A stretch of 64,000 bases of DNA from Macrostomum lignano (taxonomy: Eukaryota), in the NCBI GenBank assembly GCA_002269645.1, contig NIVC01000345.1, positions 1-64,000 on the forward strand, read 5' to 3'. This document shows positions 11,307-57,151 of the stretch, piece by piece. Under the pieces are notes generated by a model. That model was not told the DNA's origin. It saw only the letters and a program-made list of their open reading frames with translations, and searched no databases. The position numbers were made by a program, and so were the translations under genes. Each line of letters starts with the position of its first letter. Position 1 is the first letter of the stretch.

Positions 11307-20245
<8,939 letters not shown>

Positions 20246-29860: not shown

Positions 29861-32800
29861 ATGAACTCAAAGAGCGTCAAATCATTGAATGTTAAACGAA
29901 GCGAGAATACAAGTATGTTAGGCAAATGTAAGTTACAGTTTACATATTTAGGTTCAATTGTACGTGTGCCTTAGGTCCTTTGCTACAAATGCTTCTATAG
30001 TAAATTTTCGATCTTAAATTTGAAACAGGTAGTGATACTTTTGCAGACATTCTTCGCTGCGTTCGCAGGCAAGTACCCTTCTCTGTCTGTCAGACTGTTT
30101 TAAAAATTCTCAAAACACTTACGAGTACGTGACGCTTTGGTATTTATACTATTTTTCACTTTCACTGATGGAAAAAAAGAGGTAAATTATAAATTACTAA
30201 GCTTGATAATTTTCAGATTAAATTCAATTATTAAAGCATTACGAGAGCGTATCCAGGACAGTGTGGCAGCAATAAAATGGTATGATCATCACATAAATCC
30301 ACTTGATGACAGAGTAGAATGCCACAATCTTGAGACTATGGCGAGTCTGCTGAACAAACTTGTAAGTCAATTTGAGAACTTTGATAGTTTTAGCAACGAG
30401 GGCTTCAACACCAGGGGCTTTAGCACCAGGGGCTTTAGCACCAGGGGCTTTAGCACCAGGGGCTTTAGCACCAGGGGCTTTAGCACCAGGGGCTTTAGCA
30501 CCAGGGGCTTTAGCACCAGTGGCTTTAGCACCAGTGGCTTTAGCACCAAGGGGCTTTAGCACCAGTGGCTTTAGCACCAGTGGCTTTAGCACCAGTGGCT
30601 TTAGCACCAGGGGCTTTAGCACCAGGGGCTTTAGCACCAGGGGATTTAGCACCAGGGGATTTAGCACCAGGGGCGCCAGCACCAGGGGCGCCAGCACCAG
30701 GGGCGCCAGCACCAGGGGCGCCAGCACCAGGGGCGCCAGCACCAGGGGCGCTAGCACAAGGGGCGCTAGCACAAGGGGCGCCACCACAAGGGGCGCCACC
30801 ACAAGGGGCGCCACCACAAGGGGCGCCACCACAAGGGGCGCCACCACAAGGGGCGCCAGCTCCTGAGTATTAGAACTTAGCATTAGATCTGCAAAGCTGC
30901 TGTAAAAGGGCGCCAAATGAGCTGGCAAGAGGTGCCACTGTTTGCCATCCTACGGAGTGGGGGCAGCCCCTTACTTTCCTTAAGCTTCATAATTACATAT
31001 ATGCATAAGCGCCAGCTTCATGCACATCCTATTATTTGTCTTTTACGGCTGCCTTTCAGTGCACAGTTCAGGAAGATATTCAATGCCTGACGGTTCAACT
31101 GGCAAACGGAGTGGCTGAGGCCTTAGATTATCTGCAGAGCATGCAGCATTCGGCTGACGAAGGCTGGGATGGAGAAGTCACTACGGACTGTGTACTTATT
31201 GACGAGCATCTGAATGCAAAGGTAAGGCGCAGTGCTCACGATTCACACACTAAAATCGGTTGTCAAGACATTGAAACTGACATCGTGTGACTCCCGATCA
31301 ATGCTAATTTTTCAGGTTTCACTAGCAACGGATTCACTAAAAGCTACGGGATTTCAAGATCGAACAGCTTCTAAAGAACATTGTCGAGACTCTTTGCGGC
31401 AGCGAAATCAGCTTAGGGGAATACTTTATAATTATACCATCTTTGTTTTGGAACTTTTCTCTAAAATCTTATTAAAGAAAACAGTAATGCCAGAGAGCTT
31501 CGAACAGCTGCTAAAATTGCGGGCGCGTCCGAAACGATTTATTAATCATCTGGACGAACTCTGGAGTGAAGCGCGAACTAAGGGCCGCAGAGACAGTACA
31601 GATCTGACTCGACTTAAGTCAACGATTGTTCAAGTTGCAAGCATCTCCTTGTCCGAGAAGGAAGCAACCATGGCCGAAGTGAGTCAGCTTTGGAAACGTA
31701 GCGGCTTATTAAAGCAAGCACTGATTGATCGAGAACTTGTACTTCAAGTACTCAAAGGTACAATTGATAAAAGCGTTGACTTGTGGTCTGGAGATTCGGC
31801 AGCTGGCACTCTTATGGACAAGAAAACACGGAGCTTTACTGAAACTGGAAAACCAACAGAGGAAGCATGTAAAATGGAGATTTTTTCAACTGCTACAGCA
31901 TCAACTAAGACATGCAGAGTTACCGTCATGAATCTCCCCGATAACCGACAGTTTTTCAGCGGTACGTCAAAGTCAAAGACGTTTTTTGTCTTGTCTAAAA
32001 GTACGCTTATGACGTGTGCTGCGCCACGAAAAAAAAGGGTTTCAGACAGTTGTTTTCCAAGATGTTCTTATCTATTCTAGCTAATCAGTTGCGTAATGCA
32101 GTCGGTAAGATTTAAAATAAAAAGGATTTAAAGTAATAGCGACATCTGTCCAATAGACATGGAGTAGTGCATGAGAAGAAGCGGTAAAGGAGAGGATGCA
32201 GGCTGCTTATTACTCAAATATGCGGTTCAACTTATCATTGATATGTTTCAAATTGTTGGTGTCCATATGAAAGAAACATATGGTGGTACTTCTGCCTGTC
32301 TCACTGGTACAGTAGACGAGCCATACATCTCATTCTGAAAACAGAAATAAATTAGAGTTTTAAAGTTTAGTAAGAATTGGTAATTTCCAAACATTTGTTT
32401 TAATTTCATCAAGCCATCAAAACTCTGTTCTAATATAAATTAGCAGCAAAATTTGATCCTTCAGAGCTTGGCTTCAGCGGGAGCTCAGGTGGCCTGAAGA
32501 TCAGCATCTCGTCGATAGCCAGTGACCTCTCGACTGCAGTAGTCAGACAGACTATTCCCGCTATGCTAGGCGATGAAGTTGACCTGCTAACTAGAAGCTA
32601 CTCAAGTGCGACAGTCAACCACGAGCTCATTAAACGACTGTGCAACTGCTCTGAAGTTGTTGACCGACTGAAACTGATTCTACTTGAGCTGGATAGCTTA
32701 ATGACGGTCAGACATTTTGGAATCGACTCGAGTAACCAAGCTATCTCTGGTGGACAAGCCGAAACAGCTCTAAGAAATTTGCGTGAAAGAGAGCTCATAT

Positions 32801-35240: not shown

Positions 35241-36125
35241 CTTTGCATTGTTTTTCTGTTTGACGATTCTACAGACAATGCATTGTTTGTAGTAATGGAT
35301 TGTTCTGCATTAAAAATGTGAATAATGATCGTCAAATTGCTAAACAATTACAATGACCGTCAAATTGCAGCTAAACAATGGCATTCGATGCGAGAGACTA
35401 ACTAAAGTAGACTGCTAAAATATGGACCAACTTATTTAAATCGAAATTCATTTCAGAATGTAAAACTTCCGCATCTTTCTACCAGCTAGCTTTCTCGTCA
35501 GCCTTTTTTGCTTCTACATATACTGTTATCAGAAACTTTAAACAAAAGCTTACGACTAGCTAATTAAGTACGCTCGCACATGAAAAAAATGTATTATCGT
35601 TTTATAACTTTATATAGCAAAATATATAGAAAGAGCAAATCACAGAATACGGAGCAAATAGCCTAGCTGATTATGTCTCGGTACCATGCATGTCAAAAGG
35701 AGTTAGTATATTCACTCAAGTGCATAATGTCCACACACACAATGAGTTTGCATGAGTTTTTAGTTCGACAAGTTTCACAAAGCCGTGAAGAATTTCTAAA
35801 AAGTTAGTTATATTAAATTAAAGTAAAATAAAGTGCATACTAATTTCGGTCCAATTTATGAGTTAAAAATTTCTCTGAGTATTCAAAAGTGCATACGGAT
35901 ATATTTACCATCGATAGGCTCTGACTGAGCTCCACAAGGTCTTTGTCGGCAAATTTTACTACTTAGTTATCAACTGTGCTAATTATCGGCATACAAGCTA
36001 CATCAGCATCAACCAGATTACTCAACTACAGCTAAACTAACGTAGGAACCAATTTTGAATTTCGTTTTAGGATATAAGTATATTAAAAGCACGTTGCATA
36101 GAGAGAATACTTTCTCGGCAAGGAC

Positions 36126-36186
36126 ATGAAGATTGCGGGACTTCTTGAATGGGCTTTCGCTTGGACTTTGCTGCTAACCGTAATTG
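36126..36186 (+). CDS. Duplicated signal-peptide exon of the three-finger gene (alternative first exon or orphan copy)
   Basis: ATG...[21 protein letters not shown]|GTAAGT, 61 nt, phase-1 donor, near-identical to 38242-38302. The upstream region (~35695 onward) is also duplicated at ~37686 onward. No module exon of its own was found before 38242. Confidence 0.7.
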
Positions 36187-36606
36187 GTAAGTCATTTGTT
36201 GACTGTTAGTCCTTGGTATTTACTTATAGCAACGTAGGTTGGAAGTTCCATCAAGAAAGTAGACTACAGTACTACAAATTCACAAAGAGCCTTAGCACCA
36301 GGAGCCTTAGCACCAGGGGCGCCGGCAACAGTCATTAGGGGCACTACAAATGAGGGCAACGTATCACAATATACTTAAACTGGCACTTAAGGGACAGAAT
36401 TGGGAGAAATTGATCGGCTCTATTGTATTTGGTTTCAGCTTTACAATAGCTATATTTGTTGGGGGTTAAGTTATCGAAAAAATATAAATATTATTATCAA
36501 TAACCATCCTACACATACATATCACAATTTCACTATAACAGGTTACAGTAATACGCTTCTTTAAAAGCCTTCAACGTCTAAACTTCCGTATTAATTTCAT
36601 TAAATT

Positions 36607-38241: not shown

Positions 38242-41200
38242 ATGAAGAGTGCGGGACTTCTTGAATCGGCTCTCGCTTGGACTTTACTGCTAACCGTAAT
38301 TGGTAAGCCATTTGTTGACTGTTAAAATATTAGTCCTGGTGTTTACTTATAGCTAGTTACATGTAGTTACATGCAGAGGTCAATATAGTCGCAAACGAGC
38401 TCTAAAAAATGGGGTCGTGCGCACGGATTCAAATCTGGGGTTGTTTTGCGGGAGAGAGCGAGTAGCCTCGACCGTTAAGCAATTCTACCACTGTATGAAA
38501 TATTTACCATCTAGCTTTAGACCAGAGGCACGTCTTTGCATTAGGTTCACGATATTTCACAGATTGTGATGAGCAAATTCTCAAGTTAAATAAAATTTTG
38601 CGTTCGTGTCAACTACTCGTATATCAACGCAGGTTGGAAGCTGCATTGCAAAAACTTAAAAGTAGACTACTAATTACATGCGATGTAGCTATGAAACAAT
38701 TGATTTTCAGCCAACTATCAGCGCTTTTTGGTGTTTAATGATTGATACTTATAAAATTTTACCAGTGTATATTTAATTTTGACATTGCAGCGACTGCTGC
38801 AGGCCTGGAATGCCATGATCAAGAAAGCACAAATCACACAATAAAATGCTCGGATCATCAGAAAACTTGCGCTCGAAGCTACTTTAGCGACGGTGTAAGA
38901 ATTCTAACAGTGCAAAAGTGTTAATTCGAATCTACGAATTTTAAAGTCGGATTTTCAAAAAAATGTTATCTTCTCACTTCTAATTTTAGAAATTTATGGG
39001 TGCTTCCTGCGGCGGTTGCACCAAGTTTCATTTCGCCGCGCTCTCAGTCGGATTAACGGCGTTCTGCAAAACCTGCAGCGACGACAAGTGCAACTCTGCT
39101 AAGCTAACAAACGGCTTATGTAAGTTTTTTATATAATTTACTAGATGTTCTATCAAATTCTCAAAAAATAGCGTCTATGTCCCTAAGCTACAGAACTCAA
39201 ATTTATAAGCAACCCATGTTGGCTTTTTTCGCACAAATGACGAAAAACAGCGGTCGCACTATCTCTACTGCCGCAATACAAAGTGGCCTATCTAAGGGAA
39301 TAATTAAAGATCTATGGTAGCTACCAAAACACCAGCTTTTACAATTATATATACCTTTTTACGTTCTATTTGATAAAAACTGCAACCAATTTGGCCACGG
39401 CTCAGCCTGACCATAGACATAGAATTTTCCATAGACAGCCACCGCTAGCGGCAACCAATTTGGTAAAAACTGCGAGCTATTTTGCCAGCTTGAAGATAGC
39501 AGCTGCTCTGATGGCGAATCGTGGGCCGTACCAAAAGATAAGTCAGCTGGATCGAGAGCGAATCGTGAGAGCGTACAGGGGGGGGGAGTGGCGACGACTG
39601 GGGAGAGCTTGGCAGAATGATGGGGATGAAGAAACCGACAGTGAGGAACATCGTGACCACGTATGAACGAACTGGTAGAGTTGGCACTCTGCCAAAAGGA
39701 GGAGTGAAGAGGATGGCGCTGACGGAGGCTATGGTGGACACCATTGTTCAATTCGTCGAAGGTCAACCTACTGCCTCTCACGCCTCTCAAGTGCCTGCGC
39801 TGGATCAACCATTCCCAGACGTACTTCAATCCCATTCATTGAATCCCATTCCCATTCATTCCCAGACGTGCTTGAATGCTGAGGACATAATGTTCTGACT
39901 TCGTGCATGTATTGTTAACATTCTTTATCGTTATTGTTATGCTATTGAGCTGCTATCTTCAAGCTGGCAAAATAGCTCGCAGTTTTTACCAAATTGGTTG
40001 CCGCTAGCGGTGGCTGTCTATGGAAAATTGCTGCGGCTGCGTCAGGCTGAGCCGTGGCCAAATTGGTTGCAGTTTTTATCAAATAGAACGTAAAAAGGTA
40101 TATTTAAAGCCAGTTTTTTCCTGATCTTTTCTAATTGATAAAAACTATCTAGTACATGTACGTGTACAAGTAGCTAATAAAAAGAACAGGAGCGTCGCCA
40201 GGGGGGACAGGGGGGGACATGTCCCCTCCAGTAAAAAATCTGGGGGACATGCCAATGCTTTGTCTCCCCCTTACCCCACCTTTTGTATGACCCGTTGTGG
40301 AAATCAATCATCTTGCTGCAAGGCGACAAAACATAGAGCCTGCGGCGCCAAAATGAGTACCTGCGGCGCCAAAATGGTGCCTGTGGCGCCAAAATAAGTG
40401 CCTGCGGCGCCAAAATGGTTCCTGTAGCACTAAATTGAGTGCTGACAACACTGCTGATTCTGAAAATAATGTACATGCAGCAGTTTTGTAATATAATCCA
40501 CCATAAAATCCAATGCGACGTCCTTTGAAAATAAGCATAAGAAAGTCAGTTGTTGCAAAAGCCTATTTTATAATAACACTTCAGCTTTCAGCCCTCAATT
40601 CTCCTGCTCGGTCGGATCCAACTTGATTGTGCTCTGCAACACCGGGGTCAGCGTGTGTTTTCGAGCTAAATACAGCAATGGAGTAAGTTACGCTCGTATT
40701 TATTGCTAGAATTAGTGGTGTGACTAAATGAGCATCTTATTTCTTTTTTGTTATAAATACAGCGTACAATAAGCGGTTGCGGCGAGTGTGCCGGCATCAT
40801 GGCTGAGGCCTTGAAAGAGAAAAAAGCAGTCGCATGCAAAACCTGTTCGACAGCTAAGTGTAATACCGAAGTTCTATTGACTGTCGAAGGTAAGTAAATC
40901 TACATTTACTGTGCATAATCAGATTTGTTATTAGGTAATAAAGAAAGAAGCAAATTTCAATGACAAGTTACAAGTTACACAATATTAATTGGAAACGCCT
41001 TTAGTAGCAAAGGAAGTAGCAAGTAGCAAAATGACAAAATAAAGCCTTCACAAAGATAACTTTCTTAAATAGACAGCATCCCAATTACCGCAACTATCCC
41101 CCAGAATGAAAGCGTTCTCCAGATAGACAGTATCCCCCAGATAGAAAGCATGCCCTAGATACCAAGCATCCCAGATAGCAAGCATAGCAAGCATCCCTGA

Positions 41201-44200
41201 ATAGAAAGAATTCTTAGCTAGCAAGTACCCCCCAATACAAGCATCCCCCAAATACAATACTAGCAATTAAGCATCCCCCAGAAAGCAAGCATAATTTAAA
41301 TTGATCGAAAACTCTGTAAAAAAGATCAGGTTGCTGCGCCACAATGAAAAAACAGTATAACAAATTAATTTTAAAAAGCTTAGGCTCAGCGCATTCTAAA
41401 ACTTTCGTCAATTGTGATCGCAATCTTCAAGTCACCAGCATTTACCTTTGTCGCACTATCTGCAACGGATTTTGTGTCGTTAGAATTCATGTTTTGCTCT
41501 GTTGGCTAAAGTAAATTAAAAAGTAACAGCAAAATCATTTTGCTTGATTAGGGTTAGCATTTTATCGGTCTTAACAGCACTCAAGCTTGACAATGACTTT
41601 ATTAGCTATTTGTTTTAAATCATACACACTGATAGCAGTAGGTCTACATGGAATGTAAATGAATTCTTAGTTTTCTCACGATGCCTTAGAAACAAAATGC
41701 TGCTATAGAGGAAAACAATCTCTTATGAATATCCACCCTATATTGATTTCGAATGTTACATACGAATTGTTCCAATTGTTTGCTAGCGCCTACGCCAAAA
41801 ACGGAGTGTCAACCTAGCGCCGCTGTCGACCCGAAAATCCCGGCAAAATGCGTCTACTTTCAAAATGAGCACAGCGACGAGGTAAGTGCTCTGAACAACT
41901 CGATCTACTCAAGATCAAGTTTTGTACGAGCTATATACAAAGCCATCTTTTTTTACAGAAAACGATTGTTGCTACTTGCGGAGACTGTGTCAGCTTTTCT
42001 AAGTACGCCGACAAAGCGCTAATCTCAACTACTTGCCAGTCTTGCACTGCAGATACGTGCGCTGCCGAACCATCAATGGCGAAAGTTGGTAAGTATATAG
42101 CTGTCTTTTTAATAATTAAGGCTTTTAATCAGAATATACTTAATATGAGACGCTTTTTAATAATATTATTGAGCTTTTCGATTCTTATCCGACTAGCAGT
42201 GAATTTTCATGTCAAATACTAAAACATTCTGCTTATTGCAGAGCCAGCTGCTAAAGGCTTAAAGTGCTTCGTTAGTTTCGACCAAAAATCCAAAGTCAAG
42301 ACGCTAGCAATGTGCAAAGCAGGCGTGAGGCAATGTCACAGAGCCGAGTCTAAAAGCGGACGGGTAAGTCAGACAAACCTCTGTTGGAAGGCGCATGCAG
42401 TATTGTTTATTAGTGTATTATTGACAAAGAACATTCTTGTGTTTGCAGAATTTTCTACATTCGGGTTGTGGTGACTGCTCGGAAGCCAGTGAGGAAACTA
42501 AGAGTTTAGGACGCTTCGCGCGTGTTGAATGCAAATCCTGCAACACAAACGGATGCAATACGCCAAGCCTAACATTCGATAAATATGGTAATAAATATCT
42601 TCGCGGATTATTTATAATTTTTGGTAACATTTTTTTCGATTTTTATCGATAGGCCGGTAATTTTAAATTTTTTCAATCAGTTTCTTCACTAAATACGCAG
42701 TGTCCCTGGACAGAGTAGTTAGTAAATACGGCCAGGCAGTACTTCTTTCAGGAGCTGATTTTGTTTGATTAAGTAGGCTACAGTACTAGCAGAAGTATGA
42801 CCTGCACCTACAGCCAGGACTGCTTATTTTTAGAATGAATAATTTTCTCGAAATGAACAATTGAATAAAACTACTGTAAAGGCGACATACTGCTGTGTAC
42901 AAATACACAAAAGAATGAAAAAGCGACTTCATAGATATTAGTTTCGAAGCTTGCCGTACTTTTGTCACTTTATTTGTAATATTTTCCGTTAGGGTCATAC
43001 ATTTACGTACCTGTATACTAATATATTTTTCTCAAACATTTTCACTTTTTAGAATCACATTTACGATGACTTACTAATTAAAAACTCTTATTTATTACAG
43101 AAGAGGCTAGAAAATGTTATGAAGGCGAAGACAAAAGTTATACGATATTGTGCAAATTTTCGGTATGGACATGCATGCGAAGTTACTTCAGCGACGGGGT
43201 AGGTCAAATTAATTTATTGTATACTCTCGGTATGGCTAACAGTGCAGAAAGATATGCCCTGTTAGCTATCAGAATGCTAACAGGGCATATTGCAGGGCAT
43301 ATTAGAAATATATTATACATATTATACAACATACGCTCGTATTATAAAACATAATAATAAAACATAATAAATAATAATAATATTAATATTAAACTATATT
43401 ATTATATTATTAATAAATAATAATATAAAACATATTATATTAGAAATATGACAGGGCAATATAATAAAACATATTATATTAGAAATATGACAGGGCATAT
43501 TTCTGATTACAATAAATCAGAAAGCTAACTTCTACAGAAAGATATCAACAGTTTATATTTGTATCTGATTTATTGCAGACATTTATGAGCGCGGGTTGCG
43601 GAAGCTGCGACAAGTTGCATGCGGAAGCCAAAGCACTTGGAAAGACGGCTATTTGCAGAACTTGCAGCACTAACGAGTGTAATTCAGCCAGTTTGATGGC
43701 AGGTGTTGGTAAGTATAGCTTCAGTTATTATTTCCTCATTTTCTTTGATTTCTTAATTTCTTAATCCTTAGAGCGACGTCAGAAACGTTACACTCCGCCT
43801 AAAATGCGATTGCCACTTCCTAGTTAAATCAACCTACTTCTTCCAAGTTAGCAGCTATAATCAGGTAACCCAGAAGACGGAAGAGTTAACTAGGAAGACG
43901 GAAGAATTGTTTCGTTTACGCTCTCGTAATGATCGTCGCGGAATTTTAGGAGTCCTACTCGAATTTTTCTACTGCAGCTAGTAGCACCCAAAGATTTTTT
44001 CAGTAGTAGTGATTCAAATAGGCTATTCCGGATTTAACAATATTGTAAGATGAAGATTTAGTATATTGTGATAATTTGTTCTGATTATAAATGGCCTTAG
44101 AAGTAGCACGAATAAACAATTAAAGTATAGCTTTATTTAAGTGCTGTTAATTCAAATCGGATTTTTAACTAGGACACGATCTATTTCTTATTACTAGTTT

Positions 44201-47200
44201 AACCTTGAATATTCACATTGGCTTCAACTTATTTATGCGGGACTTTTTGTGCATGGGGGTTAATCCTCAGGTTGTTAATCGCAAGTCAACCCCATAGGCC
44301 AATTTTCTTGTACCCCCAAAGTATCAACTGATGCAAAATAGTGTTTGACATTTGCATTTTTCACTTGGGGCAAATAAAATTGGGTTAGCTACCGATCATG
44401 CTCAGTGCACAATCGGGTGCTACATGTAACATGCAATTACCGTCTAAGATTTCCGTGTAAGAAGTCCTGATATTTATGCTTATTTCCTGATTAATGTAAT
44501 TCAATATTAAGTGACGCAATTGTTTGGTGTCTACATTAGTTGCAGAAAACCCACCGTCAGTTTTCGTGCTGATTTACAATGAATGCCGTTTTCATTGCAG
44601 AATTCCGTGAGTTCTTTCGCTGCCACGTGGCTAATTTTGGCAGAAGATCTTCTACTTCAGTGTGCAATCATGGTGTTACTACCTGCTATGAAGCTGAACT
44701 TACTGATGGGGTGAAAATTTTTAAGCGAATTTTTCTATTGACAAAATTGAAATTAATTATTTCAACTTCCAAGTCAATTTGATTTTTTTCTTAAACTTGC
44801 AGGAAAGGATGGCAAACTGTGGCACCTGTGCAGAGGTTAATAAAAACAAAAAGACAGACAAAAATTGCAAAACTTGCAACACTCCACTATGTAATGTGGG
44901 CCTTCTAAAGCCCTCCCAAGGTACAGAAATTATTGTTGAAGGGACTTAATTTATTAGTATTCTAGAGACAGTGGCACCTACCAAAAGACAGGGGTGCCCA
45001 CCAATAGACAGCGACCAAGAGACAGTGACCAAGAGACAGTGACCAAGAGACAGTGACCAAGAGACAGTGACCAAGAGACAGTGACCAAGAGACAGTGACC
45101 AAGAGACAGTGACCAAGAGACAGTGACCAAGAGACAGTGACCAAGAGACAGTGACCAAGAGACAGTGACCAAGAGACAGTGACCAAGAGACAGTGACCAA
45201 GAGACAGTGACCAAGAGACAGTGACCAAGAGACAGTGACCAAGAGACAGTGACCAAGAGACAGTGACCAAGAGACAGTGACCAAGAGACAGTGACCAAGA
45301 GACAGTGACCAAGAGACAGTGACCAAGAGACAGTGACCAAGAGACAGTGACCAAGAGACAGTGACCAAGAGACAGTGACCAAGAGACAGTGACCAAGAGA
45401 CAGTGACCAAGAGACAGTGACCAAGAGACAGTGACCAAGAGACAGTGACCAAGAGACAGTGACCAAGAGACAGTGACCAAGAGACAGTGACCAAGAGACA
45501 GTGACCAAGAGACAGTGGCGCCCACCAAGAGGCAGTGCGCCCACCAAGAGACAGGGGTGCCCACCAAAATGCCTAATTTGTAGGCCCTTCCCTGGTAAAA
45601 TGTACTGAAATTAGGCAACTCATAGCTAGAGCAGCACATCAATAAACTTTAAAAGAAGATTGCATACTTTTTTATCCGATACAGACTTTGAGTGCTACGT
45701 GAGCTTCAATAAGTCAGTAAACGTTGTGGAAAAATGCCCGCCGGGAGTAAAAAGCTGTTTCCGAGCCCAATCCACTGATGGGGTAAGTCGGTTTGATAAG
45801 CATACTTGTTTTTTGATGTGTGTGATGTAAAGTGTGTAACTCATTTGTTTTCTAATTTTTAATGGAGCCCGTGAAAAGTCGGTTTAATTAATTTCATTGG
45901 CTAGAAATTTTCTTTTAAACTGATGGAATATACACGTCTTTGTGTCCGCTGAATCTTGACACACTTGACTTAGCTGCAGGGCTGTCCCAGAGGGGAGGCA
46001 CAGCGAGAAGACGCGAACGCCCATTCCGCTAATCCCTGAACGGCCGACGTGTCGCTATAGATGATTGATTATCCATAGTCGGCTCGAAGGCCATGATAAA
46101 AGGTTGGTGGGCTACCCTCGAAGGGGCGCGGTACCCACCCGGCCGCTCCACCTGATCGGGCAGTAGGCCAAAAGAACCCTCAAGGCTGGCCCGACACCAG
46201 GAGGGGGACCACTTGCGACCGGACAACTCCCCGGCCTTCCAGCCTATCGGCACGAGTAGCCTTAGGCATGCCTTAGGCCTTAGGCATTAGAGCGTACGTA
46301 CGATCACCCTGGCCGCCAGTCTAGCCGACCGCGCACGGCCGAGTCTCGACGACAGCGGAACATCCGCCGCAACCGTAAGCGGCAGGAGAAGCGGGCTGCT
46401 GCTGCGTCTGAGGAGGGCACGCAAGCCGCGGTGAGGCCTTCGGGAGCCACCGCAGCGGGGAGGCCCTCTGGGGAGTCCGGTGGCGCGGCTGGGCCGTCAG
46501 GAACCGCCGTGTCCTCGGGCTCTCAGGGGGGCAACCCTGCCGGCCTACCGCCTTCCAAAGACAAAGCGGCCCCGCTCAAGACCTCCGAGTCCTACGCGTC
46601 CAAGGTCAAGCAGCCGCTGCAACCCGCCGTGATGATCCTCGGCGGGGATTTCGACCTGACGCCCGAGCAGCTCGACGTCGCGTGGCGTACCATCGACGAG
46701 GGCTTGCTCAATCTAACCCTGGAGGGCGTCTTCGTGGACATCGTCAAGTCCACCAAGGCGAACGGGTGCATCCTACTGTGGTGCAAATCCGAGGAGAGCA
46801 CCCAGCTCCTGCGGGATCAGCTGCCCAAGTTCGACTGGCACAGCGACCTGGGCCAGCTGACCTTCGCCTTGGAGAGCGAGCGGCCGAAGACCATCCGCCA
46901 TCGGATTTGGGTCCCGGCCGACAGTGCAATCAAGTCCGGGGAGCAGCTGCGGCAGCTCCTGCTCAAGCGGCACCCGGATCTCGACGCCAGTGGTCTTGTG
47001 TACCACAGCACGGTCCGCAAGGGCACGACCGGGGCCACAGTCATCCTCGGCCTGACGGAGGGATGGGCCAAGCGGCTACCGCACGGCACAAACCTCCACC
47101 TTGGTCTCCATCAACTGACCATCCTCCGCTGTGAGGAGGGCAAGGTGGAGACCAAGAAAGACGGGAAGCGCGCCGCTCCCGGAGCTGGGGCTCATGCCCC

Positions 47201-50200
47201 GCCGGCCAAGCGGCAGCAGCAACCCGATCCCGAGCCTAACAAGGCTATTCGCGCTGCTGAGTCCGCCTCGCGCGGACGTAGACCCGCCCGCAGTAGCCGG
47301 CGGTCCGGTCTAATCCAGCGCGCACTTGACGAAGCTCAGTCTCTGAGACTTCACCTCGAGCAGACTCGTGCCGCTCGAAAAAACACTGAAAGCCAGCCGA
47401 GGGAACTGGACGACGGCACGGCTCAGCCTTCCAACTGGTGGGATTACCACCAGGAGGACGCTGCCGGCCGAGCTCAGACTCCCGACGGCGGGGCGCAAGG
47501 CGAAGGCAGCAGCCGTACCCCAGTCGCTGGGGAGGAGGGCGGTGTAGCGCGGCTAGGTGACTCACCTGCCGTGGGCGCCGTGTCCGCCTCCGCGGCGGCT
47601 GGGGAGGCGGCTGAGCCTGAGCCAATGGAAATTGGCGACTCAACTCTCACCGATGAGGCTGAGAATGAGTTGCTTTTCTCCTCCCCTGGACAGTAGACAT
47701 GACTGTCTCCCAGGGCATCCACTGCTTGCAGGTCAACCTGCAGCACAGCATTGCTGCTTCAGTCAACCTCTTGAAGCACACTGACCAATACGTGCCAGGG
47801 ATTATCCTTATCCAGGAACCTTGGACGCTTAGGGGCAGCCCCCAACATGTCCCCACCGGCTACCAGTGTTTAACCGCTGGTACCCGGGAGGGAAACCTGG
47901 CACCAAGATCCTGCATCATGGTGTCCAGTTCTATTAACGCATGGCTCAGATCAGACCTGTCCACCAGGGACATCTGTGTCATCCAGTCTGAAGACATACT
48001 CCCTGGGAGGACTACCCTCATCGCCTCGGTTTACCTACCGGGCGACGGCGAGATGATCCCAGTAGAGCTTGTCACACTGGTCGAGCTCTGCTCCACCAGA
48101 AACTATGAGCTGCTCGTGGCAGGTGACATCAATGCCCACCACACCCACTGGGGCAGTTCTGATATAAACCAGAGAGGTGAAGACTTCCTGGCTTATATTG
48201 CTACTACAACCCTTGAGTTCTGTAACTCGGGTAGTACCCCTACCTTCAATAACGGACGCCGATCGGAGGTGCTGGATGCCACCCTCGCCACGCCCAGGCT
48301 CTTCCAGAGCACTAGGGAATGGCGGGTGCTTCCTGAGGCGTCCCTCTCCGATCACAAGTTCATCTCTTTCACGCTGGCCAGCGCCCGTAACGCAGGCCAG
48401 CTTTACTGGAAACGGAATGCTAGGAATACCGACTGGACCGCCTTCAGGCTTGCCCTGGAGGAGACCTATCGTTGCACTAGCGCTCCAGTCTCCATCAACA
48501 CCTGCGAAGAAGCAGATGAATTTGCGGCCGCACTTACGGACTCGCTCACTGCTGCCTTCGAAGCCTCATGCCCACTAAAGGCATATAAAGGCAAACAGTC
48601 GGCCCCATGGTGGAACCCGCAGCTTGGCGACCTCCGTCGCAGAGCCAAAAGGCTTCACCGCAGGGCCCAAAAAACTAAAAACCCGGCCGACCAAACCGCC
48701 TACCTGAACTCTATCCACGAGTTCAAGAGGCAGGTTAGGAACGCCAAAACCAACAAGTGGCGCGAATACTGTGAGGAACTTGAGGGCTCCCGCCCCACCT
48801 CCAGAATCGTTAAAGCCCTCACCCTGGACAAAATGTCCAAACTCTCCTCAGTCAAGAGAGCCGACGGCTCGCTCACTGAGAACCCAGGAGAAACACTGGA
48901 AGCGATGCTAACAGCGTTTTTCCCGAACGAGCCAGCTAGGCCCGGCCCCCTGACCACTCAGTGGGCGGACACGTACTGGCTGACTCAATCATCACGGAGG
49001 ACCGCGTTACTAAAGCTGTCTCCTCCTTCAAACCCTTCAAATCCCCAGGACCGGACGGCGTTGTGCCAGCCTTCCTGCGGGAGGCGGTGAAATGCACCGG
49101 TTTCCTGCGGAACCTTTGCCGGCTTCTGAAAGCCTGCATTGTGCTCGGCTTTGTTCCGAAATCCTGGACCGAGGCCAAGGTGGTCTTTATCCCCAAGCCT
49201 GGCCGACCGGACTACCGGTCCATTAAATCCTTCAGACCAATTAGCCTCACCTCCTCATTGGTGAAGCTGTTAGAGAGACTGGTGCTCTGGCGCCTCCTCT
49301 CTGTGGAACTGAAGAACAAGCCGCTCAGTGAGAACCAGCATGCCTTTCGGGCAGGCAGGTCCACGGAGAGCGCGCTTCACGTTCTGGTTGACATGCTGGA
49401 GAAAGCCGTTCTTGGTAATGGCTACGCTCTCGCTGTCTTCCTCGACATTGTTGGAGCCTTCGATAATGTCCTCTTTGAGGCCTTTGACAGAGCTCTACGT
49501 GCTAGAGGAACCCACTCGCACCTCACCCGGTGGATCATGTATATGATCAGCCACCGTACTGCCACCGCACACCTGTTGGGCCACCAACGGACGGTAACCG
49601 TCTGCAAAGGCAGCCCCCAGGGCGGTGTCCTCTCTCCAGTTCTCTGGAACATGGTCATCGATGAGCTCCTCCAGGACAGCCATCTTGACCCCATCCTCAA
49701 GGTCGGTTACGCCGATGATGTCACAGCCGTGGCATCCGGACCGTCACCTGAAACCCTTAGAGATCTTTTGCAAAACTTCATTCGCTCTGCTGAACGTTGG
49801 GCGGACAGGTGCGGCCTCAGGCTCTCCGAGACCAAAACTGTCGCGATCATGTTCACCAGCAGGGTAAACTGGCGTATTCGCCCACTAAAGCTTTACGGGG
49901 TGGAAATTCCATCCTGCAAGCAAACCAAGTGTCTCGGCGTTACGCTGGACCACCGGCTGAGCTGGTCCACCCACGTCCAGGCCAAAACCAAAAAAGCCCT
50001 CGCGATTCTTGCGCAGCTGCGCAGAGCCGTCGGCACCACCTGGGGCCTCACCCCAAAGCGTCTCTGGTGGATCTATACCGCAATGGTCCGACCGGCCGTT
50101 ACATACGCCGGCCTGGTCTGGACCAGCGCCTTGCAGATTAAAACCTGCCACGAAGCCCTCAAAAAGGTGCAGGGACGTGCGTGCCGCATGATCCTGAATG

Positions 50201-53200
50201 CCCCGCTCTCTGCTCCCTTTGACGGCCTCAACGCCTTTCTCTGCCTCCCGCCTCTGGACATCTTTGTCCGTCGCGAGGCTGCTAAAACCACCCGCCGGCT
50301 CATCGAGGCTGGTGTTAGCTTCAAGCCACAAAGAGCGATGGCGAAGCGCAAGCTCCTGCCGCACTCTGACCTGTGCCTTAAAGTTCTGGAGGAGAGTGGG
50401 AGTGCGGCTGTCCTTTCGGACGCTGAACCGCGCTCCCTCAACCTCTACCAACGCTTCAAGGTCACGATCCCCTCCAGGGAGAACGCCAACGACAGCTGGG
50501 CCCCTCAGGAGGTTCACTGCTTCACTGACGGATCCTCCAAAGACGGTTTATCCGGCTTTGGAGTCTGCATCCTTATCAACGGCCGCGTGATTGCTACTCA
50601 CGCCCAACACACTGGCAGACTCTCCAGCGTCTTCCAGAATGAAGTCCTTGCCATCAGCTCCTGTGCAGCTGAGCTCCACCGCAAGGACTTCAAGGACAGA
50701 AGAATCTTCTTCCACTCTGACAGCCAGGCCGCTTTACAGGCCCTGTGTCACACCACTACGAACTCCCGAACAGTCCGCGACTGTATCGGGCAGCTCAACA
50801 AGCTGGCTCGGAGGAACACCGTCCGGCTCACGTGGATCCCAGGACACGCCGGCTTCAAAGGTAACGAGCTCGCCGACTCCCTCGCTAAGGCGGGCTGTTC
50901 CGGCTCGCCCCTTGGCCCCGTGCCCCTGGCCCCCATCCCCGCCACAGTCATTAATCGTCAGATTAACGACTGGGCGGACATCCTGCACTTGCGCAGATGG
51001 GATGGTATCTCCAACTGCCGCCAATCTCGTGCGGCAGTGCCCAATCCGTCCCTCAAGCTGCGGAGAATCCTTTTGAATCAAAATCGAAAAGATATCCGCG
51101 CTCTCACTATGACCTTCACAGGTCACGGTTGCTTTGCCAGGCACTGCTTCCTCCGATGTGTTCGCCGGAGTGAACTCTGCCCCTTCTGCAGCCTCGAGAA
51201 TGAAGATGCCATGCACTTCGTCTGCTACTGCCCGGCCTTCAACCGAGACCGGCTCAACCACCTCGGGCCCAACCCGTCCCTGGACGACGTTTGCCGGCCC
51301 GAGAACATCCCACGGCTCATCCGGTTCCTCCGGGCCACCAAGCGAGCCTCCGTCTTCCCCACCGAAGACAACGCTGCAGACAGGACCGGCAGACCTCCCT
51401 GACCGGCCCCGCGCCCTAGCCTATGCGGGTCTTTCAGGGATTAGCGGAATGGGCGACGCTCGCCTCCCCGCTGCGTCTTCGGACCGCCCTGCAGCTAAGT
51501 CAAGTAAGTCAAACGTTGTGGAAAAATGCCCGCCGGGAGTAAAAAGCTGTTTCCGAGCCCAATCCACTGATGGGGTAAGTCGGTTTGATAAGCATACTTG
51601 TTTTTTGATGTGTGTGATGTAAAGTGTGTAACTCATTTGTTTTCTAATTTTTAATGGAGCCCGTGAAAAGTCGGTTTAATTAATTTCATTGGCTAGAAAT
51701 TTTCTTTTAAACTGATGGAATATACACGTCTTTGTGTCCGCTGAATCTTGACACACTTGACTTAGCTGCAGGGCTGTCCCAGAGGGGAGGCACAGCGAGA
51801 AGACGCGAACGCCCATTCCGCTAATCCCTGAACGGCCGACGTGTCGCTATAGATGATTGATTATCCATAGTCGGCTCGAAGGCCATGATAAAAGGTTGGT
51901 GGGCTACCCTCGAAGGGGCGCGGTACCCACCCGGCCGCTCCACCTGATCGGGCAGTAGGCCAAAAGAACCCTCAAGGCTGGCCCGACACCAGGAGGGGGA
52001 CCACTTGCGACCGGACAACTCCCCGGCCTTCCAGCCTATCGGCACGAGTAGCCTTAGGCATGCCTTAGGCCTTAGGCATTAGAGCGTACGTTGAGCAGTA
52101 CCACGGCCCGCATACCCAAGTTCGGCAAAAGCCACTGAATGGTCCCCAGCGCCGGAGCCCAGTCTATCCGGCAGCCCTAGGGTCTGCCTTGAACACTCGC
52201 GGCCCGAACGGATACCCCTGAGTCGGCTTGCGAGACAGCGTGGAGGGGGGGTCTGCGGCTGCCAGCGGCAAATCTAGGGTGCAGACCTCCCACCAGTCTT
52301 TACCTGCTGAAGATAACGGCATGGTCTGTCTCATACTTCACTATCATGCTGAATATGCCCCTGCGAGCAAATCACTTCATAGAGAACCGTGAAAATGCAT
52401 ACAGGAAAAATAATATTTCCGGGTTTTTTCCTGGTAGAAATTAATATCACGATAAAATTAGTTAAAAACGAAACTCTATTTAAATATCTTGAGCATGCGT
52501 TCCACTGAATCGATGATAAAACGACACAAAAAATACGTATACACATGTATCTAGAACCAAATTGTCAAACTACACCAGTATAATTTAATATCGAAACTTT
52601 CCAGTAGTGTATGCACTATTCATATCGCAGTTTCTTTAAGAGTCTTACATTGATTCCTCATATTGTTCATGTTAAAATATATTTAATGTTCTTTAAGGAA
52701 TTTGACAGAAAATTTAATTGATAGTCAAATTAATTTTAAGGCGGTATTCATTGCTGCCTGCGGGAATTGCGAGCCGTTCAATTCTCACATCAAAGGAGCA
52801 GCCGAGGGTGTCACTTGCAAGGCCTGCGGCACGGAACGGTGCAATTCGGCCCAACCGCCGGAAAAAGCTGGTGAGAATTTATATTCAGAAACTGACATAC
52901 TGTAAAAGGAAATTTACACAAAAGCACATAGGGCATTCGTATCGTATGCAGTTTTATAGAAAATATTATAGATAACACACTTAAACCGACGCAGAGTTAG
53001 TCAATTAATTTGAGAGCGACTAAATCGGAAGATTTTATTGTGTCCAAAGATGACGTCATAATCACTAGTTGATGTTGGACACGTCAATAATAACGTCATG
53101 CATCACGGATGTACTAGTCCGTGTTTAACCCGTTCCATAGGGAGACAGCTAGCAGTCCGATGTCTAAATTGATATTTATAATCTTTAACCTAATTTATAC

Positions 53201-56200
53201 CACAATTTAATACGCGTCTATTTAACGTACATGTACGAGCGTATCTTATTATCAGCCACTGAAGGCATCGAGTGTAACATTAACTTTGGAACCGGCGCTA
53301 GCACGACGGTGAAATGTGGAGCAACAGTCCGGTCCTGTTTCCGAGCTGAGCTAAAGGACGGGGTAGGACTATTCGGGGTGTGAATTTTATTCAGCAGCAA
53401 AGCAACTATAGAAGTAATTTATCTACAAAAATTACTCTGCAATTTCAGAAGGAATTCGCCTCTTGTGGCGATTGCAATGGGGCTACTGCTCTGTTTGGGC
53501 GTATTGGAAATTTGGTCAGGTGCGATGCCTGTTTTACTGATCGATGCGGTTCAATGCAAGGTAAGAAGTACTATACTAGTAACAGTGTCCCCTGACTGAC
53601 TCGTATATTACGGTCGTAATTTTACCAGTAAAATACCGGTATCCATCTGAGTGATTAGCGATATGGCCAATGTGTAAATATTTTAATTGTTAACTGAAAA
53701 AACGATACCAATAATGAGGTCGCTACACTTCAGCCGTCAAACTTGCATCGAGACTCGCGTGTTACACCTATGCCAGCAAAACTTTAAGAACGGAGATAGG
53801 ATGCAGCCCCGGACAGACGAGCTGTTTTCTGGCTGAATTCAGTAGCGGGGTAATTCAAGGCCTACTAATCGCTGTTTCATTGTAGTAGATAAAGCTGTAT
53901 TGATAACTTTAGTAATTTCCAAGCAATTTTACCTTACAAATCTTTTCAGTCTGTCTCAGGTGGTTGCGGAGACTGCTCCCGTAGTAAGACTTTTGCTAAT
54001 GGTATGAGACAGTCTGTCAATTGCAGCACCTGTACCACAGACAAGTGCAATACGTTTTCGTCAACATCTGGAGCTGGTAAGTAGCTCGTAGTACCTAACT
54101 GCTTTTGGTATGCTATTTTAGAATAGAGATGATAAAGTAAAGATAGTTTGAGCCATAGACAACATGCAAATTTTTTACTGAGAAACCCGCGACTGAAAGA
54201 CAACAATTTTCAAGCCTGCATACGATTGGGCATCAAAATTGAGAGTCACTATGATTGAATACCTCAAGGAGCATCTTCGGTTGATTGCAAGCAATTTTTG
54301 TTCTAGGAATTAGCAAAAGAAGTCACTAGTGCAGACTGATGTTTATCGAATCGTTTGAAAATATATAGGAACGGATATCCTTGTGTTCTAGAGTCCTAGA
54401 GATGTGCTAGATTAGATTTCTCAGTAGAGTTTCTCAGTTAGAAATGTGCCTGCTAGGGTGCAACCCTTTGGTTATCTGTTTTCTTAATTAGCACAACGGA
54501 AGTAATACTCATTCTTTAACTCTTTCTTTAAGCCGATTAACTGGCATAAAAGTCTATTAATTGCCTCCCACGTTCTTGTAACGGTCATTATCATGTACTA
54601 TAAAAACACGTTTTCAGCCGCAGCTGGCCCAGCACCTGTACTGACATGCTATGCACACTCAAACACTGCCGCAAAAATCGAACAGAGCTGTCCTGGATTC
54701 AATAAGTGCTATTTGGCTATTTACGGTAGTGGGGTGAGTCGACGCACAGATGTCAACGCGCATTGTTATTTAAACAGAAAGTCAGTTGTTCGATGTGTTT
54801 GATTTTTTTTCAGGCGGAATCGGGTAATTGTGGAGACTGCTCCCTGATCGAGTCTGCAGCTAAACTTACAGGACAAACAATCAAATGTAGCACCTGCAGC
54901 ACAGACAAGTGTAATGCGGGCTCGTCTACAGGTGCCATCGGCGCCGGCGGTGAGTGCCAATATACGATAATTTTTTAACTAGCTATGGGAATGGAGACAA
55001 TTATCCTATATACGTCTAGAACCATTCCCTAGGCGCACTTATCTCGGTTTTAAAGGTTCCTTAGCATGAAAACACGCATATACCTACCGACAGACCATTT
55101 TTAGTACTTGGAAGTTGGGCCTACGAGCTAAACTTTCTTGCCTTCTCACTGCCTTTGATTTGCGGTAGTGCAGAGTGCTCACCTACAAACTAAAATATTT
55201 CCTGTGGATAAAAAAACAACAGTTTCAGGGCCTGGAAGTGCATCGGCCCTCACGTGCTACTTATTTGACTACAAAAGCAACGGACAACCCACTGAGCAGA
55301 AATGTTTTACAGGTCGAGAGTGTATGACAGTTTTCCATGATAAAAAAGTAAGTCAGCCTAAGTCTTCAAGGAATGAATAAAGATACTTCAAGTTAATTTT
55401 CCTTTGTTTCTTTGCTATTATAGGCCATGTCGGGTGCTTGCGGAGACTGCTCGATTATCAATAGTGCAGTCAAGAAGATGGCGGTAAATTCGATAACATG
55501 CACAACCTGCAGCAAAGACAAGTGCAACTCAGGCTGGTCGAATAGCGGAGCTGGTGGTGAGCTTATCAGACGTTCGGGTGACATGTTCAACCTTTTTTTC
55601 AAGAATAGTTGGTAAAAACAAACAATACGTGCATGAATTGCAGGATGCACCAGGGGCTTTAGCACCAGGGGCTTTAGCACCAGGGGCTTTAGCACCAGGG
55701 GCTTTAGCACCAGGGGCTTTAGCACCAGGGGCTTTAGCACCAGGGGCTTTAGCACCAGGGGCTTTAGCACCAGGGGCTTTAGCACCAGGGGCTTTAGCAC
55801 CAGGGGCTTTAGCACCAGGGGCTTTAGCACCAGGGGCTTTAGCACCAGGGGCTTTAGCACCAGGGGCTTTAGCACCAGGGGCTTTAGCACCAGGGGCTTT
55901 AGCACCAGGGGCTTTAGCACCAGGGGCTTTAGCACCAGGGGCTTTAGCACCAGGGGCTTTAGCACCAGGGGCTTTAGCACCAGGGGCTTTAGCACCAGGG
56001 GCTTTAGCACCAGGGGCTTTAGCACCAGGGGCTTTAGCACCAGGGGCTTTAGCACCAGGGGCTTTAGCACCAGGGGCTTTAGCACCAGGGGCTTTAGCAC
56101 CAGGGGCTTTAGCACCAGGGGCTTTAGCACCAGGGGCTTTAGCACCAGGGGCTTTAGCACCAGGGGCTTTAGCACCAGGGGCGCCAGCACCAGGGGCTTT

Positions 56201-57151
56201 AGCACCAGGGGCTTTAGCACCAGGGGCGCCAGCAGCAACAGTCGCTTTAGCACCAGGGGCGCCAGGAGCAACAGTCGTTAGCAGCGACAAAGCTACAAAA
56301 GGAGGGCAACGTATTCCTTTATCAAATTCATTGCTCTCACCTCGCGATTCAGCCCCTTCGCTTTAGGTTTTTGAGCACTAAATATTGCTTAGTGTTAATT
56401 CGATGCGTATTTACATTTTAGTGTCTGCATCGGCTCCAGGATTCAAGTGCTACGTGTTTAACAACGGCAGTGGGAAAATGACTGATAAATGCAGTTCGCC
56501 TCTTAGCTGCCTGCTTTCCAAATATAATAATGGGAACGGTGATGTAAGTCACAAGTGTCCTGTCGGAGTATTGTGATTTCTACAAGTAAAAAATCAACCT
56601 CAACTCCCTTTAAGCTTGTGCTTGATAGTTGGATGGAAGTTTTCGTATGATTCCATCATTGAGGGCCATTCCCCAAATGCACAGAGGGTACGTCACAGCC
56701 TGACGATTAGAAAGCCGGGGCCGCTGTACACTTGTGTGAGCGTGTCTATGAGTGCGTGCCTGCGTACAGTATTGAAGCACTTGGTATACGTGTAGGCAGG
56801 AGTCACAGGAATGGGCAGATATAAAAGCGCTGCTTTTGGGACGATTCATTTACTGTGGGAAATGTATATAGCGTCGAGACGTCTCATTTATTAGCAACAT
56901 GAATGTCTTTGCAGATTTTTGAAGGCAGATGTGGAGACTGCGCCGCGATAAACGCCATGGGCAAGATAACAGGAGTGAAAGTCGAGTGTCACAGCTGCAA
57001 AACTGACCTGTGCAACTCTGTTGAAGAATTCAAGAGAATCAGCAGTGCCAAGTCTGATGAGCAAAGCAGCGCTTCCTCGGTACAATACGGCAATATTGAA
57101 ACCATTGGCATAAATGTATTTTTGGCTGTAGCTGTATTTGCTTATGCTTGA
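38242..57151 (+). CDS. Secreted, probably GPI-anchored protein with 12 tandem three-finger (Ly6/uPAR-like, CxxC-x4-CN ending) modules, ~1004 aa
   Basis: Signal exon 38242-38302 ([20 protein letters not shown]). Module exon pairs: 38791-38894/38990-39119, 40585-40682/40763-40889, 41787-41881/41959-42088, 42242-42363/42449-42587, 43101-43198/43579-43708, 44601-44710/44803-44920, 45685-45782/52741-52870, 53256-53362/53449-53560, 53734-53849/53950-54076, 54618-54733/54814-54949, 55229-55347/55424-55556, 56422-56543/56915-57151. All are GT-AG and in frame (3015 nt). a-exons carry 3 Cys; b-exons carry CGxC...CxxCxxxxC(N). The last exon ends in a Ser-rich spacer and hydrophobic tail (SSASS...[15 protein letters not shown]). 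Confidence 0.85.
39352..40100 (+). mobile_element. Tc1/mariner-family internal-deletion derivative
   Basis: ~150-bp terminal inverted repeats (TACCTTTTTACG... / ...CGTAAAAAGGTA) with TA on both flanks. Internal HTH transposase remnant from ATG 39511 ([19 protein letters not shown]... [17 protein letters not shown]), frameshifted in a G run and lacking the DDE domain. Confidence 0.82.
45012..45517. repeat. 14-bp minisatellite (GACAGTGACCAAGA)
   Basis: Direct reading. Confidence 0.93.
46302..47696 (+). CDS. LINE ORF1 (gag-like nucleic-acid chaperone), N-terminally truncated
   Basis: Stop-free frame from the 5' junction with no ATG start. Basic N-terminus ([16 protein letters not shown]), central globular core, and a stop 2 nt before the ORF2 ATG. 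Confidence 0.8.
   Translation, partial: DHPGRQSSRPRTAESRRQRNIRRNRKRQEKRAAAASEEGTQAAVRPSGATAAGRPSGESGGAAGPSGTAVSSGSQGGNPAGLPPSKDKAAPLKTSESYASKVKQPLQPAVMILGGDFDLTPEQLDVAWRTIDEGLLNLTLEGVFVDIVKSTKANGCILLWCKSEESTQLLRDQLPKFDWHSDLGQLTFALESERPKTIRHRIWVPADSAIKSGEQLRQLLLKRHPDLDASGLVYHSTVRKGTTGATVILGLTEGWAKRLPHGTNLHLGLHQLTILRCEEGKVETKKDGKRAAPGAGAHAPPAKRQQQPDPEPNKAIRAAESASRGRRPARSSRRSGLIQRALDEAQSLRLHLEQTRAARKNTESQPRELDDGTAQPSNWWDYHQEDAAGRAQTPDGGAQGEGSSRTPVAGEEGGVARLGDSPAVGAVSASAAAGEAAEPEPMEIGDSTLTDEAENELLFSSPGQ
47699..51402 (+). CDS. LINE ORF2 (APE-RT-RNase H), split by one frameshift
   Basis: ORF-track entries 47699..49090 and 48961..51402 join if one C is added to the C5 run at 48946-48950 (giving ...[19 protein letters not shown]...). 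Confidence 0.88.
51511..52091 (+). repeat. 581-bp direct duplication of 45719-46299 flanking the LINE
   Basis: The two copies look identical by eye at offset 5792, from AAACGTTGTGG to GAGCGTACGT. The segment includes the 3' part of module-7 exon a and its donor. Confidence 0.93.
51747..52347 (-). mobile_element. 601-bp non-autonomous retroelement (SINE-like) sharing the LOA LINE 3' tail
   Basis: Flanked by GCTGAAT direct repeats (51740-51746 and 52348-52354). On the minus strand it ends ...CAGGGATTAGCGGAATGGGCG...GCCCTGCAGCTAAGTCAAG, matching the LINE 3' UTR (~51435-51504). No coding capacity. A partial copy lies at 45955-46299. Confidence 0.8.
55647..56280. repeat. 15-bp minisatellite (GGGGCTTTAGCACCA), same unit as the 30.4 kb array
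   Basis: Direct reading. Confidence 0.93.
56640..56830 (+). mobile_element. Diverged SINE copy in last intron of the three-finger gene
   Basis: GGGGCCGCTGTACACTTGTGTGAG ... GGAATGGGCAG match the SINE body. Confidence 0.5.

Follow-up and report, generated by a model that had tools for sequence, protein, structure and literature searches.

The window that we analysed is the first 64 kb (64,000 nucleotides) of contig NIVC01000345.1 in the Macrostomum lignano assembly Mlig_3_7. Over positions 28242-64000 it was compared with the contig record and agrees with it base for base. On its forward strand lies a gene that GenBank places at exactly 38242-57151 (+) as BOX15_Mlig015647g1, with its protein, PAA85130.1, described as a "hypothetical protein". 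It is a real single gene, already annotated yet uncharacterised, and we consider it probable that it encodes a secreted, glycosylphosphatidylinositol (GPI)-anchored cell-surface protein of about 1000 residues, built from twelve tandem domains of the Ly6/uPAR (LU) type.

We rebuilt the gene from the raw sequence as 25 exons on the + strand, with every splice site GT-AG. A signal exon of 61 nt (phase 0 to 1) is followed by twelve modules, each encoded by a pair of exons that we call a and b. The twelve a exons are 95-122 nt long and all run from phase 1 to 0. The b exons run from phase 0 to 1 and are 112-139 nt long, the last, exon 12b, being 237 nt and carrying the sole stop codon. This is the arrangement that an earlier reading of the DNA, made without database searches and referred to here as the sequence-only reading, had described: a signal exon, twelve a/b modules, and a stop and GPI-type tail in the last exon only. 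The exons and modules are as follows.

38242-38302, +, exon 1, start codon and signal peptide, phase 0 to 1
38791-38894 (exon 1a) and 38990-39119 (exon 1b), +, module 1
40585-40682 (exon 2a) and 40763-40889 (exon 2b), +, module 2
41787-41881 (exon 3a) and 41959-42088 (exon 3b), +, module 3, degenerate
42242-42363 (exon 4a) and 42449-42587 (exon 4b), +, module 4
43101-43198 (exon 5a) and 43579-43708 (exon 5b), +, module 5
44601-44710 (exon 6a) and 44803-44920 (exon 6b), +, module 6
45685-45782 (exon 7a) and 52741-52870 (exon 7b), +, module 7
53256-53362 (exon 8a) and 53449-53560 (exon 8b), +, module 8
53734-53849 (exon 9a) and 53950-54076 (exon 9b), +, module 9
54618-54733 (exon 10a) and 54814-54949 (exon 10b), +, module 10
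55223 (GenBank) or 55229 to 55347 (exon 11a) and 55424-55556 (exon 11b), +, module 11
56422-56543 (exon 12a) and 56915-57151 (exon 12b), +, module 12, with the Ser-rich stalk, GPI-type signal and stop in 12b

The open reading frame has 1004 codons for amino acids, or 1006 with the alternative acceptor of exon 11a. At that exon there are tandem acceptors at 55223 and 55229, 6 nt apart and in frame, and the upstream one, used by GenBank, adds Val-Ser; with 55223 our model is identical to PAA85130.1, residue for residue. Exon 2a also has tandem acceptors, at 40585 and 40592, but these are 7 nt apart and the downstream one breaks the frame, so that the start of the exon is fixed at 40585. Some 40 nt before the start of exon 1 there is a TATAAAA sequence. 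Nine of the twelve introns between an a exon and its own b exon are only 76-100 nt long, as against 153-1465 nt for the introns between modules, while the intron between 7a and 7b has 6958 nt.

The protein begins with its only signal peptide and ends in a single hydrophobic tail, and inside it there is no hydrophobic segment of comparable strength. The linkers between modules are short and rich in Ala, Gly, Ser and Pro, there are four N-glycosylation sequons, and module 12 is followed by a Ser-rich stalk. By eye and by hydropathy the C-terminus fits a GPI signal (small-residue omega region, polar spacer, hydrophobic end), with SSASS, then VQYGNIET, then a hydrophobic stretch of 15 residues with a mean Kyte-Doolittle value of 2.2. 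The sequence-only reading of a single gene with a secreted, probably GPI-anchored product of twelve three-finger modules is supported by these features together with the fold comparisons that follow.

The twelve modules and their fold

The modules are 66-76 residues long, where LU domains have 60-90 residues and 8-10 cysteines. Eight cysteines are present in eleven of them, and the protein as a whole has 95, that is 12 x 8 minus 1. When the modules are aligned there are eight invariant columns, made up of seven cysteines and the glycine of a CGxC motif, and the eighth cysteine is missing in module 3 only. Module 3 has seven cysteines, being without the third, and ends in CxxCxxxxCA. Identity of the other modules to module 10 is 23-46%. 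As the sequence-only reading had noted, the loops are very divergent and the cysteine positions fixed, apart from the one cysteine missing from module 3. Its claim that the modules end in CxxCxxxxCN is correct for ten of the twelve, the others being module 3 (CA) and module 8, which ends in CxxCxxxxCG. A search of all six frames of the 64 kb with the expression CxxC-x(3-5)-C[NGADS] matched the twelve b exons and nothing else, and the repeat pattern is far beyond chance.

The C-terminal motif typical of LU domains is CCxxxxCN, and here two further residues stand between the cysteines of the doublet. We read CxxCxxxxCN as a variant of that motif and not as its absence. The eight cysteines align to the four core disulfides of the LU fold, and the pairing would be Cys1-3, 2-4, 5-6 and 7-8. 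The bridge in loop 1 that is present in ten-cysteine LU domains is missing, as it is in short-chain snake neurotoxins. The sequence-only reading had noted that the N-terminal CxxC is reduced to a single cysteine.

For the fold itself we have an AlphaFold2 model of module 10, made from an alignment of 12 rows that are the protein's own repeats. It has a pLDDT (predicted local distance difference test) of 92.6 and the element order E-E-E-E-H-E. When the model was compared with the PDB by Foldseek, all 50 of the matches listed were three-finger proteins, including erabutoxins, short neurotoxins, uPAR, CD59 and Prod1. The query-normalised TM-scores (template modelling scores) were 0.5-0.75, with uPAR structures among those listed reaching 0.75, and the 20 best matches had probabilities of about 1.0, with none of the 50 listed below 0.72. 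The three-finger domains proposed in the sequence-only reading are therefore what the model of module 10 gives.

Comparisons by profile point the same way but stay below threshold. A profile of the twelve modules searched against the PDB gave full-length alignments with short-chain three-finger neurotoxins alone, with E values of 0.004-0.2. By hhalign the profile matched erabutoxin a with a probability of 84%, with the first four cysteines in register and 43 aligned columns, and the same comparison with human CD59 was negative, with a probability of 0.9%. Pfam searches with single modules, another check proposed in the sequence-only reading, gave matches that are below threshold but cluster in one clan, namely DUF753 for six of the twelve modules, cobra-type toxin for three, and CD59 and TOLIP for one each. 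The best, to DUF753, has an E value of 0.014 and scores about 15 bits where the cut-off is 24.7. Taken together the model and these comparisons make a three-finger fold for the typical module well supported as a prediction, but this support does not extend to the degenerate module 3.

Origin and splicing of the array

The exon structure is that expected of the LU family. In LU genes a signal exon is followed by two exons per domain, a layout that multi-LU genes keep with every further domain; the internal intron is at the tip of loop 2 and the flanking introns are generally in phase 1 (PMC6600238). The M. lignano gene shows each of these features: its domains are encoded by exon pairs that follow a signal exon and are flanked by phase-1 introns, and in the model of module 10 the boundary between a and b falls at residues 31|32, in the tip of loop 2 between the strands at 23-28 and 33-37. 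Most probably a two-exon ancestral LU cassette was tandemly duplicated again and again to give the gene, which is why the a exons are all in phase 1 to 0 and the b exons all in phase 0 to 1. Duplication of whole cassettes also predicts that the a and b halves should agree in their relationships, and the clearest kinships between modules (1 with 5; 9, 10 and 11 together) do agree in the two halves.

The locus is a canonical LU cassette amplified twelve times. Since a generic LU layout has been copied by duplication, the symmetry of phases needs no explanation in terms of splicing: the exon pattern is ordinary for the family and carries no specific information on splicing. More generally, symmetric exon phases in a gene for tandem domains are an expected by-product of cassette duplication and not evidence for programmed diversity, and this gene shows the extent to which a two-exon LU cassette can amplify within one gene.

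With regard to the mRNA, the Mlig_3_7 annotation was built from transcripts only, using StringTie/TACO, mapped Trinity contigs and TransDecoder, and its pipeline splits transcriptional units wherever there is a trans-splice or poly(A) site (PMC5730564). The product that includes all exons, of 1005-1006 residues, is annotated at three near-identical loci, whose proteins are about 98% identical, although the isoform filter of TACO, at 0.75, would have removed minor isoforms. One paralogous locus, L001, has these 25 exons in the same order. The window copy differs from L001 by 16 synonymous and 16 non-synonymous changes, a ratio per site (pN/pS) of 0.28; the changes are spread over the modules and no cysteine is replaced. 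To judge from these differences, divergence of the copies indicates purifying and not diversifying selection. The main product would be a constitutively spliced mRNA of 25 exons.

The sequence-only reading had offered, as the alternative to a long multivalent receptor or adhesin, a Dscam-like or variable-cassette system, in which a/b pairs are spliced combinatorially, by skipping of modules or by a(i)-b(j>i) chimeras, to give many receptor isoforms. It was right that such joins are compatible with the frame, as the phases of the exons allow whole modules to be skipped and any a exon to be joined to any downstream b exon without loss of frame, and the very divergent loops between fixed cysteines could be taken in its favour. 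However the phase pattern is the generic LU layout, kept in all multi-LU genes (PMC6600238), the transcript-derived annotation has all 25 exons at three loci, and our searches returned no further GenBank (NCBI) protein of the family, such as an alternative isoform. The short introns within modules favour pairing of each a exon with its own b exon, as far as splicing can be judged from intron lengths, and a search for docking or selector sequences found no 8-10-mer shared or complementary between introns beyond shuffled controls. Nor does the pN/pS between copies, with the changes spread over the modules, point to diversifying selection. There remain two UniProt entries, from the annotation of the older ML2 assembly, that have non-consecutive joins, both including 4a>7b: A0A1I8GG40 (2b…4a>7b, then a cryptic out-of-frame acceptor inside 10b, then 12b) and A0A1I8GNK6 (S…4a>7b, 8a, 8b>10a, 10b). 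The ML2 assembly has 32% error-free bases as against 95% for Mlig_3_7 (PMC5730564). We take both models to be gene predictions, and a predictor may drop symmetric exons to restore the frame; the out-of-frame piece of 10b in A0A1I8GG40 is typical of a predictor rescuing the frame in this way. The exon-skipping joins are thus probable artefacts of prediction, and there is only a slim chance that 4a>7b and 8b>10a hint at alternative splicing of the array in vivo. Were combinatorial splicing to occur, one gene, present as three near-identical copies in a neopolyploid genome, would give a repertoire of distinct GPI-anchored receptors, and it would be a form of splicing-based exon shuffling previously undescribed for three-finger proteins. 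We think it very unlikely, and the claim of Dscam-like diversity is not supported by the phases, the annotation, the intron lengths or the intron motifs.

Two other readings bear on the single gene and on the fold. Tandem clusters of three-exon LU genes are common (PMC6600238), polycistronic precursors are resolved by trans-splicing in M. lignano (PMC5730564), and there is a duplicated signal exon upstream of the gene, so one might ask if the model is a mis-joining of tandem single-domain Ly6 genes, or if the locus is split by internal promoters, trans-splicing or poly(A) sites. But the locus itself has a single signal exon and a single hydrophobic tail, the a exons start in phase 1 with no start codon or signal peptide of their own, 12b alone among the b exons has a stop, and a pipeline that cuts at trans-splice and poly(A) sites still gives one coding sequence for 1006 residues at each of the three loci. 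We regard a split locus as extremely unlikely, and the modules as separate genes can be rejected on the single signal exon, single tail and single stop. The other reading is that the modules are not three-finger domains, the protein being instead of a CxxC-repeat type, like the variant-specific surface proteins (VSPs) or high-cysteine membrane proteins of Giardia, or of a zinc-ribbon type. Automatic UniRef names ('Variant-specific surface protein', 'High cysteine membrane protein') suggest the former, and for the latter the b half (CGxC…CxxC) does match eS27 zinc ribbons (E ~0.004-0.3) and some zinc-ribbon Pfam models (E 0.03-0.35). These matches are confined to the b half, whereas full-length alignments are to three-finger toxins only, and the confident model of module 10 has the three-finger fold, which the LU-type intron position also fits. 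The signal peptide makes the protein extracellular, and extracellular cysteines would form disulfides rather than bind zinc; the b half as a zinc ribbon is rejected on these grounds. In the case of the Giardia proteins, Pfam VSP gave no match even at E values up to 10, and the tail is of GPI type without CRGKA. We give almost no credence to either form of this reading.

There are nevertheless several points that weigh against the reading of the gene as encoding twelve GPI-anchored LU domains. No sequence match to Pfam or the PDB reaches a curated threshold, and the full-length protein has no Pfam match at all. The predicted fold depends on one confident model, for which the 12 repeats of the protein itself served as alignment rows. 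A model of modules 3 and 4 together, from six alignment rows, is poor, with a mean pLDDT of 57.8; module 4 is of moderate confidence in it, with the element order of module 10, and module 3 is essentially unmodelled. The b half alone matches eS27-type zinc ribbons at a similarly weak level. GPI anchoring, though most probably correct, and the disulfide pairing are deduced from sequence. The two ML2 models omit exons, so exclusively constitutive splicing is unproven. In full texts and in the supplements of three M. lignano papers we found no expression or functional data for gene ids Mlig015647 and Mlig019351.

If the gene does encode twelve GPI-anchored LU domains, the anchor would hold twelve loop-presenting binding modules on the outer leaflet of the membrane, and the 36 variable loops would act as a multivalent receptor, an adhesin or a component of a surface coat. 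Other GPI-anchored LU proteins work in this way, the single-domain tegumental Ly6 proteins of parasitic flatworms among them. M. lignano is tractable for transgenesis and RNA interference, and localisation and function could easily be tested.

Intronic elements, upstream copy and neighbouring genes

Several other features were found within and around the gene.

36047-36208, +, second proximal promoter and 61-nt signal exon, ~90% identical to the used copy, with ATG and GT donor intact
39345-40107, no strand assigned, terminal inverted repeat (TIR) element in intron 1b>2a, with inverted arms at 39345-39504 and 39948-40107
45957-51510, + (sense), non-LTR (long terminal repeat) retrotransposon in intron 7
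46431-47696, +, ORF1-like open reading frame (ORF) of the retrotransposon
47699-49090, +, APE endonuclease of the retrotransposon
48961-51402, +, reverse transcriptase and RNase H of the retrotransposon, with a frameshift between the APE and reverse transcriptase parts
51511-52091, +, perfect 581-bp duplicate of 45719-46299, covering the final 64 nt of exon 7a and the GT donor of that exon

The upstream copy of the promoter and signal exon is about 2.1 kb 5' of the one in use and is present in L001 too, at 7828-7989. It is likely to be an alternative first exon or a remnant of duplication. As the start of a separate LU gene it was rejected, there being no LU exons between the copy and the gene.

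In intron 7 the 581-bp direct duplication brackets the 5.2-kb body of the retrotransposon (46300-51510) and so supplies the intron with a decoy donor (51574/51575). The retrotransposon ends 3' in about 80 nt that repeat its 5' end, imperfectly and in inverted orientation. In L001 there is only an 'A-B-E' arrangement, without the retrotransposon body. The duplication could be a long target-site duplication, or a product of recombination, or an assembly artefact. The TIR element is about 760 bp long, with near-perfect terminal inverted repeats, one block of 82 nt matching at 100% and another of 67 nt at 99%. It appears to be a recent insertion of the MITE (miniature inverted-repeat transposable element) type, recent because it is absent from the paralogous intron of L001. 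There are also intronic minisatellites at 45000-45517, where a 14-mer is present 37 times, and at 55647-56260, with about 41 copies of the 15-mer GCACCAGGGGCTTTA. The 15-mer family seems to recur near 30.2-30.9 kb, going by ORF translations, and matches L001 at 2943-3233.

Elsewhere in the window there are tandem paralogous ORFs at 11307-23649 (-) and 31232-32080 (+) with matches to the C-lobe of protein kinases (PK_Tyr_Ser-Thr, E 4.6e-6), and the cluster also has a weak match to a death domain (E 0.0045). The sequence-only reading had placed a diversity system beside a cluster of death-kinase genes. The kinase/death-domain genes are real, but nothing links them to the LU gene.

Relatives and known systems

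When 1.84 billion representative proteins were searched exhaustively with the profile, the only homologues came from M. lignano, these being the three copies of the gene, an ML2 model and a paralog of 195 residues with two modules. Two repeat proteins that were also in the output are unrelated, the match being confined to a stretch of 30 residues. The paralog, A0A1I8HQT5, has the pattern CGxC…CxxCxxxxCN, a signal peptide and a hydrophobic tail, and it shows that in M. lignano there is a small family of genes for this putative LU variant. UniProt labels one of the ML2 models 'DUF753 domain-containing'. As far as these data go the subfamily appears to be lineage-specific.

The short-chain alpha-neurotoxins of snakes (erabutoxin a/b, neurotoxin II, cobrotoxin) give the best structural and profile matches to the modules. 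They share the eight cysteines, the core of four disulfides (predicted for the modules) without a bridge in loop 1, a similar length (60-70 residues) and the terminal CN. However they have CGC (GCGC) where the modules have CGxC, and the module has a helix in loop 3, as does CD59, that the short-chain neurotoxins do not have. They are also single-domain proteins secreted into venom, whereas the M. lignano protein has twelve domains and is predicted to be tethered to the membrane. The resemblance is at the level of the fold, and nothing suggests toxicity.

Within the same phylum there are SmLy6/SmCD59 of Schistosoma and FhLy6/FgLy6 of Fasciola, which are GPI-anchored proteins of the tegument surface with the LU fold. 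These have a single domain with ten cysteines and a CxxC start, in contrast to the twelve eight-cysteine domains discussed here, and the search with the module profile did not bring up any of them.

With Drosophila Dscam1 the likeness is formal only, and lies in the presence of homologous, phase-compatible exons in series. In a Dscam array the exons are alternative versions of each other, and each mRNA includes exactly one, chosen by pairing between docking and selector RNA sequences. In contrast the annotated M. lignano mRNA has all of the exons, and the introns are without docking or selector motifs.

In structure the protein belongs with uPAR, C4.4A, Haldisin, CD177 and other multi-LU proteins that are GPI-anchored, and it would work as they do. 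Like uPAR (PLAUR, three LU domains), C4.4A (LYPD3) and Haldisin (LYPD5), with two each, CD177 and the multi-LU proteins of Drosophila, it has a signal peptide, tandem LU domains and nothing else by way of domains, and a predicted GPI-type signal, and like them it is encoded by one exon pair per domain, with phase-1 flanks and with the two exons of a pair parted at the tip of loop 2. It differs in having twelve domains instead of 2-4, in having CxxC in place of the CC doublet, and in the disulfide that is missing: all twelve domains are without the 2-3 bond of loop 1, whereas in the mammalian multi-LU proteins it is the 7-8 bond that is absent, and only in the first domain. There is also no detectable sequence homology between them, the Pfam matches being sub-threshold. 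A review gives the number of LU domains per protein in Drosophila as 'from 2 to 44', citing Hijazi et al. 2009 (PMC6600238), and twelve, while unusual, may be no record. Multi-domain LU proteins are nonetheless few, and the best studied, uPAR, assembles its binding site from several three-finger domains. A GPI-tethered protein of twelve domains, all of the eight-cysteine type, in an early-branching free-living flatworm would extend the known range of this architecture.

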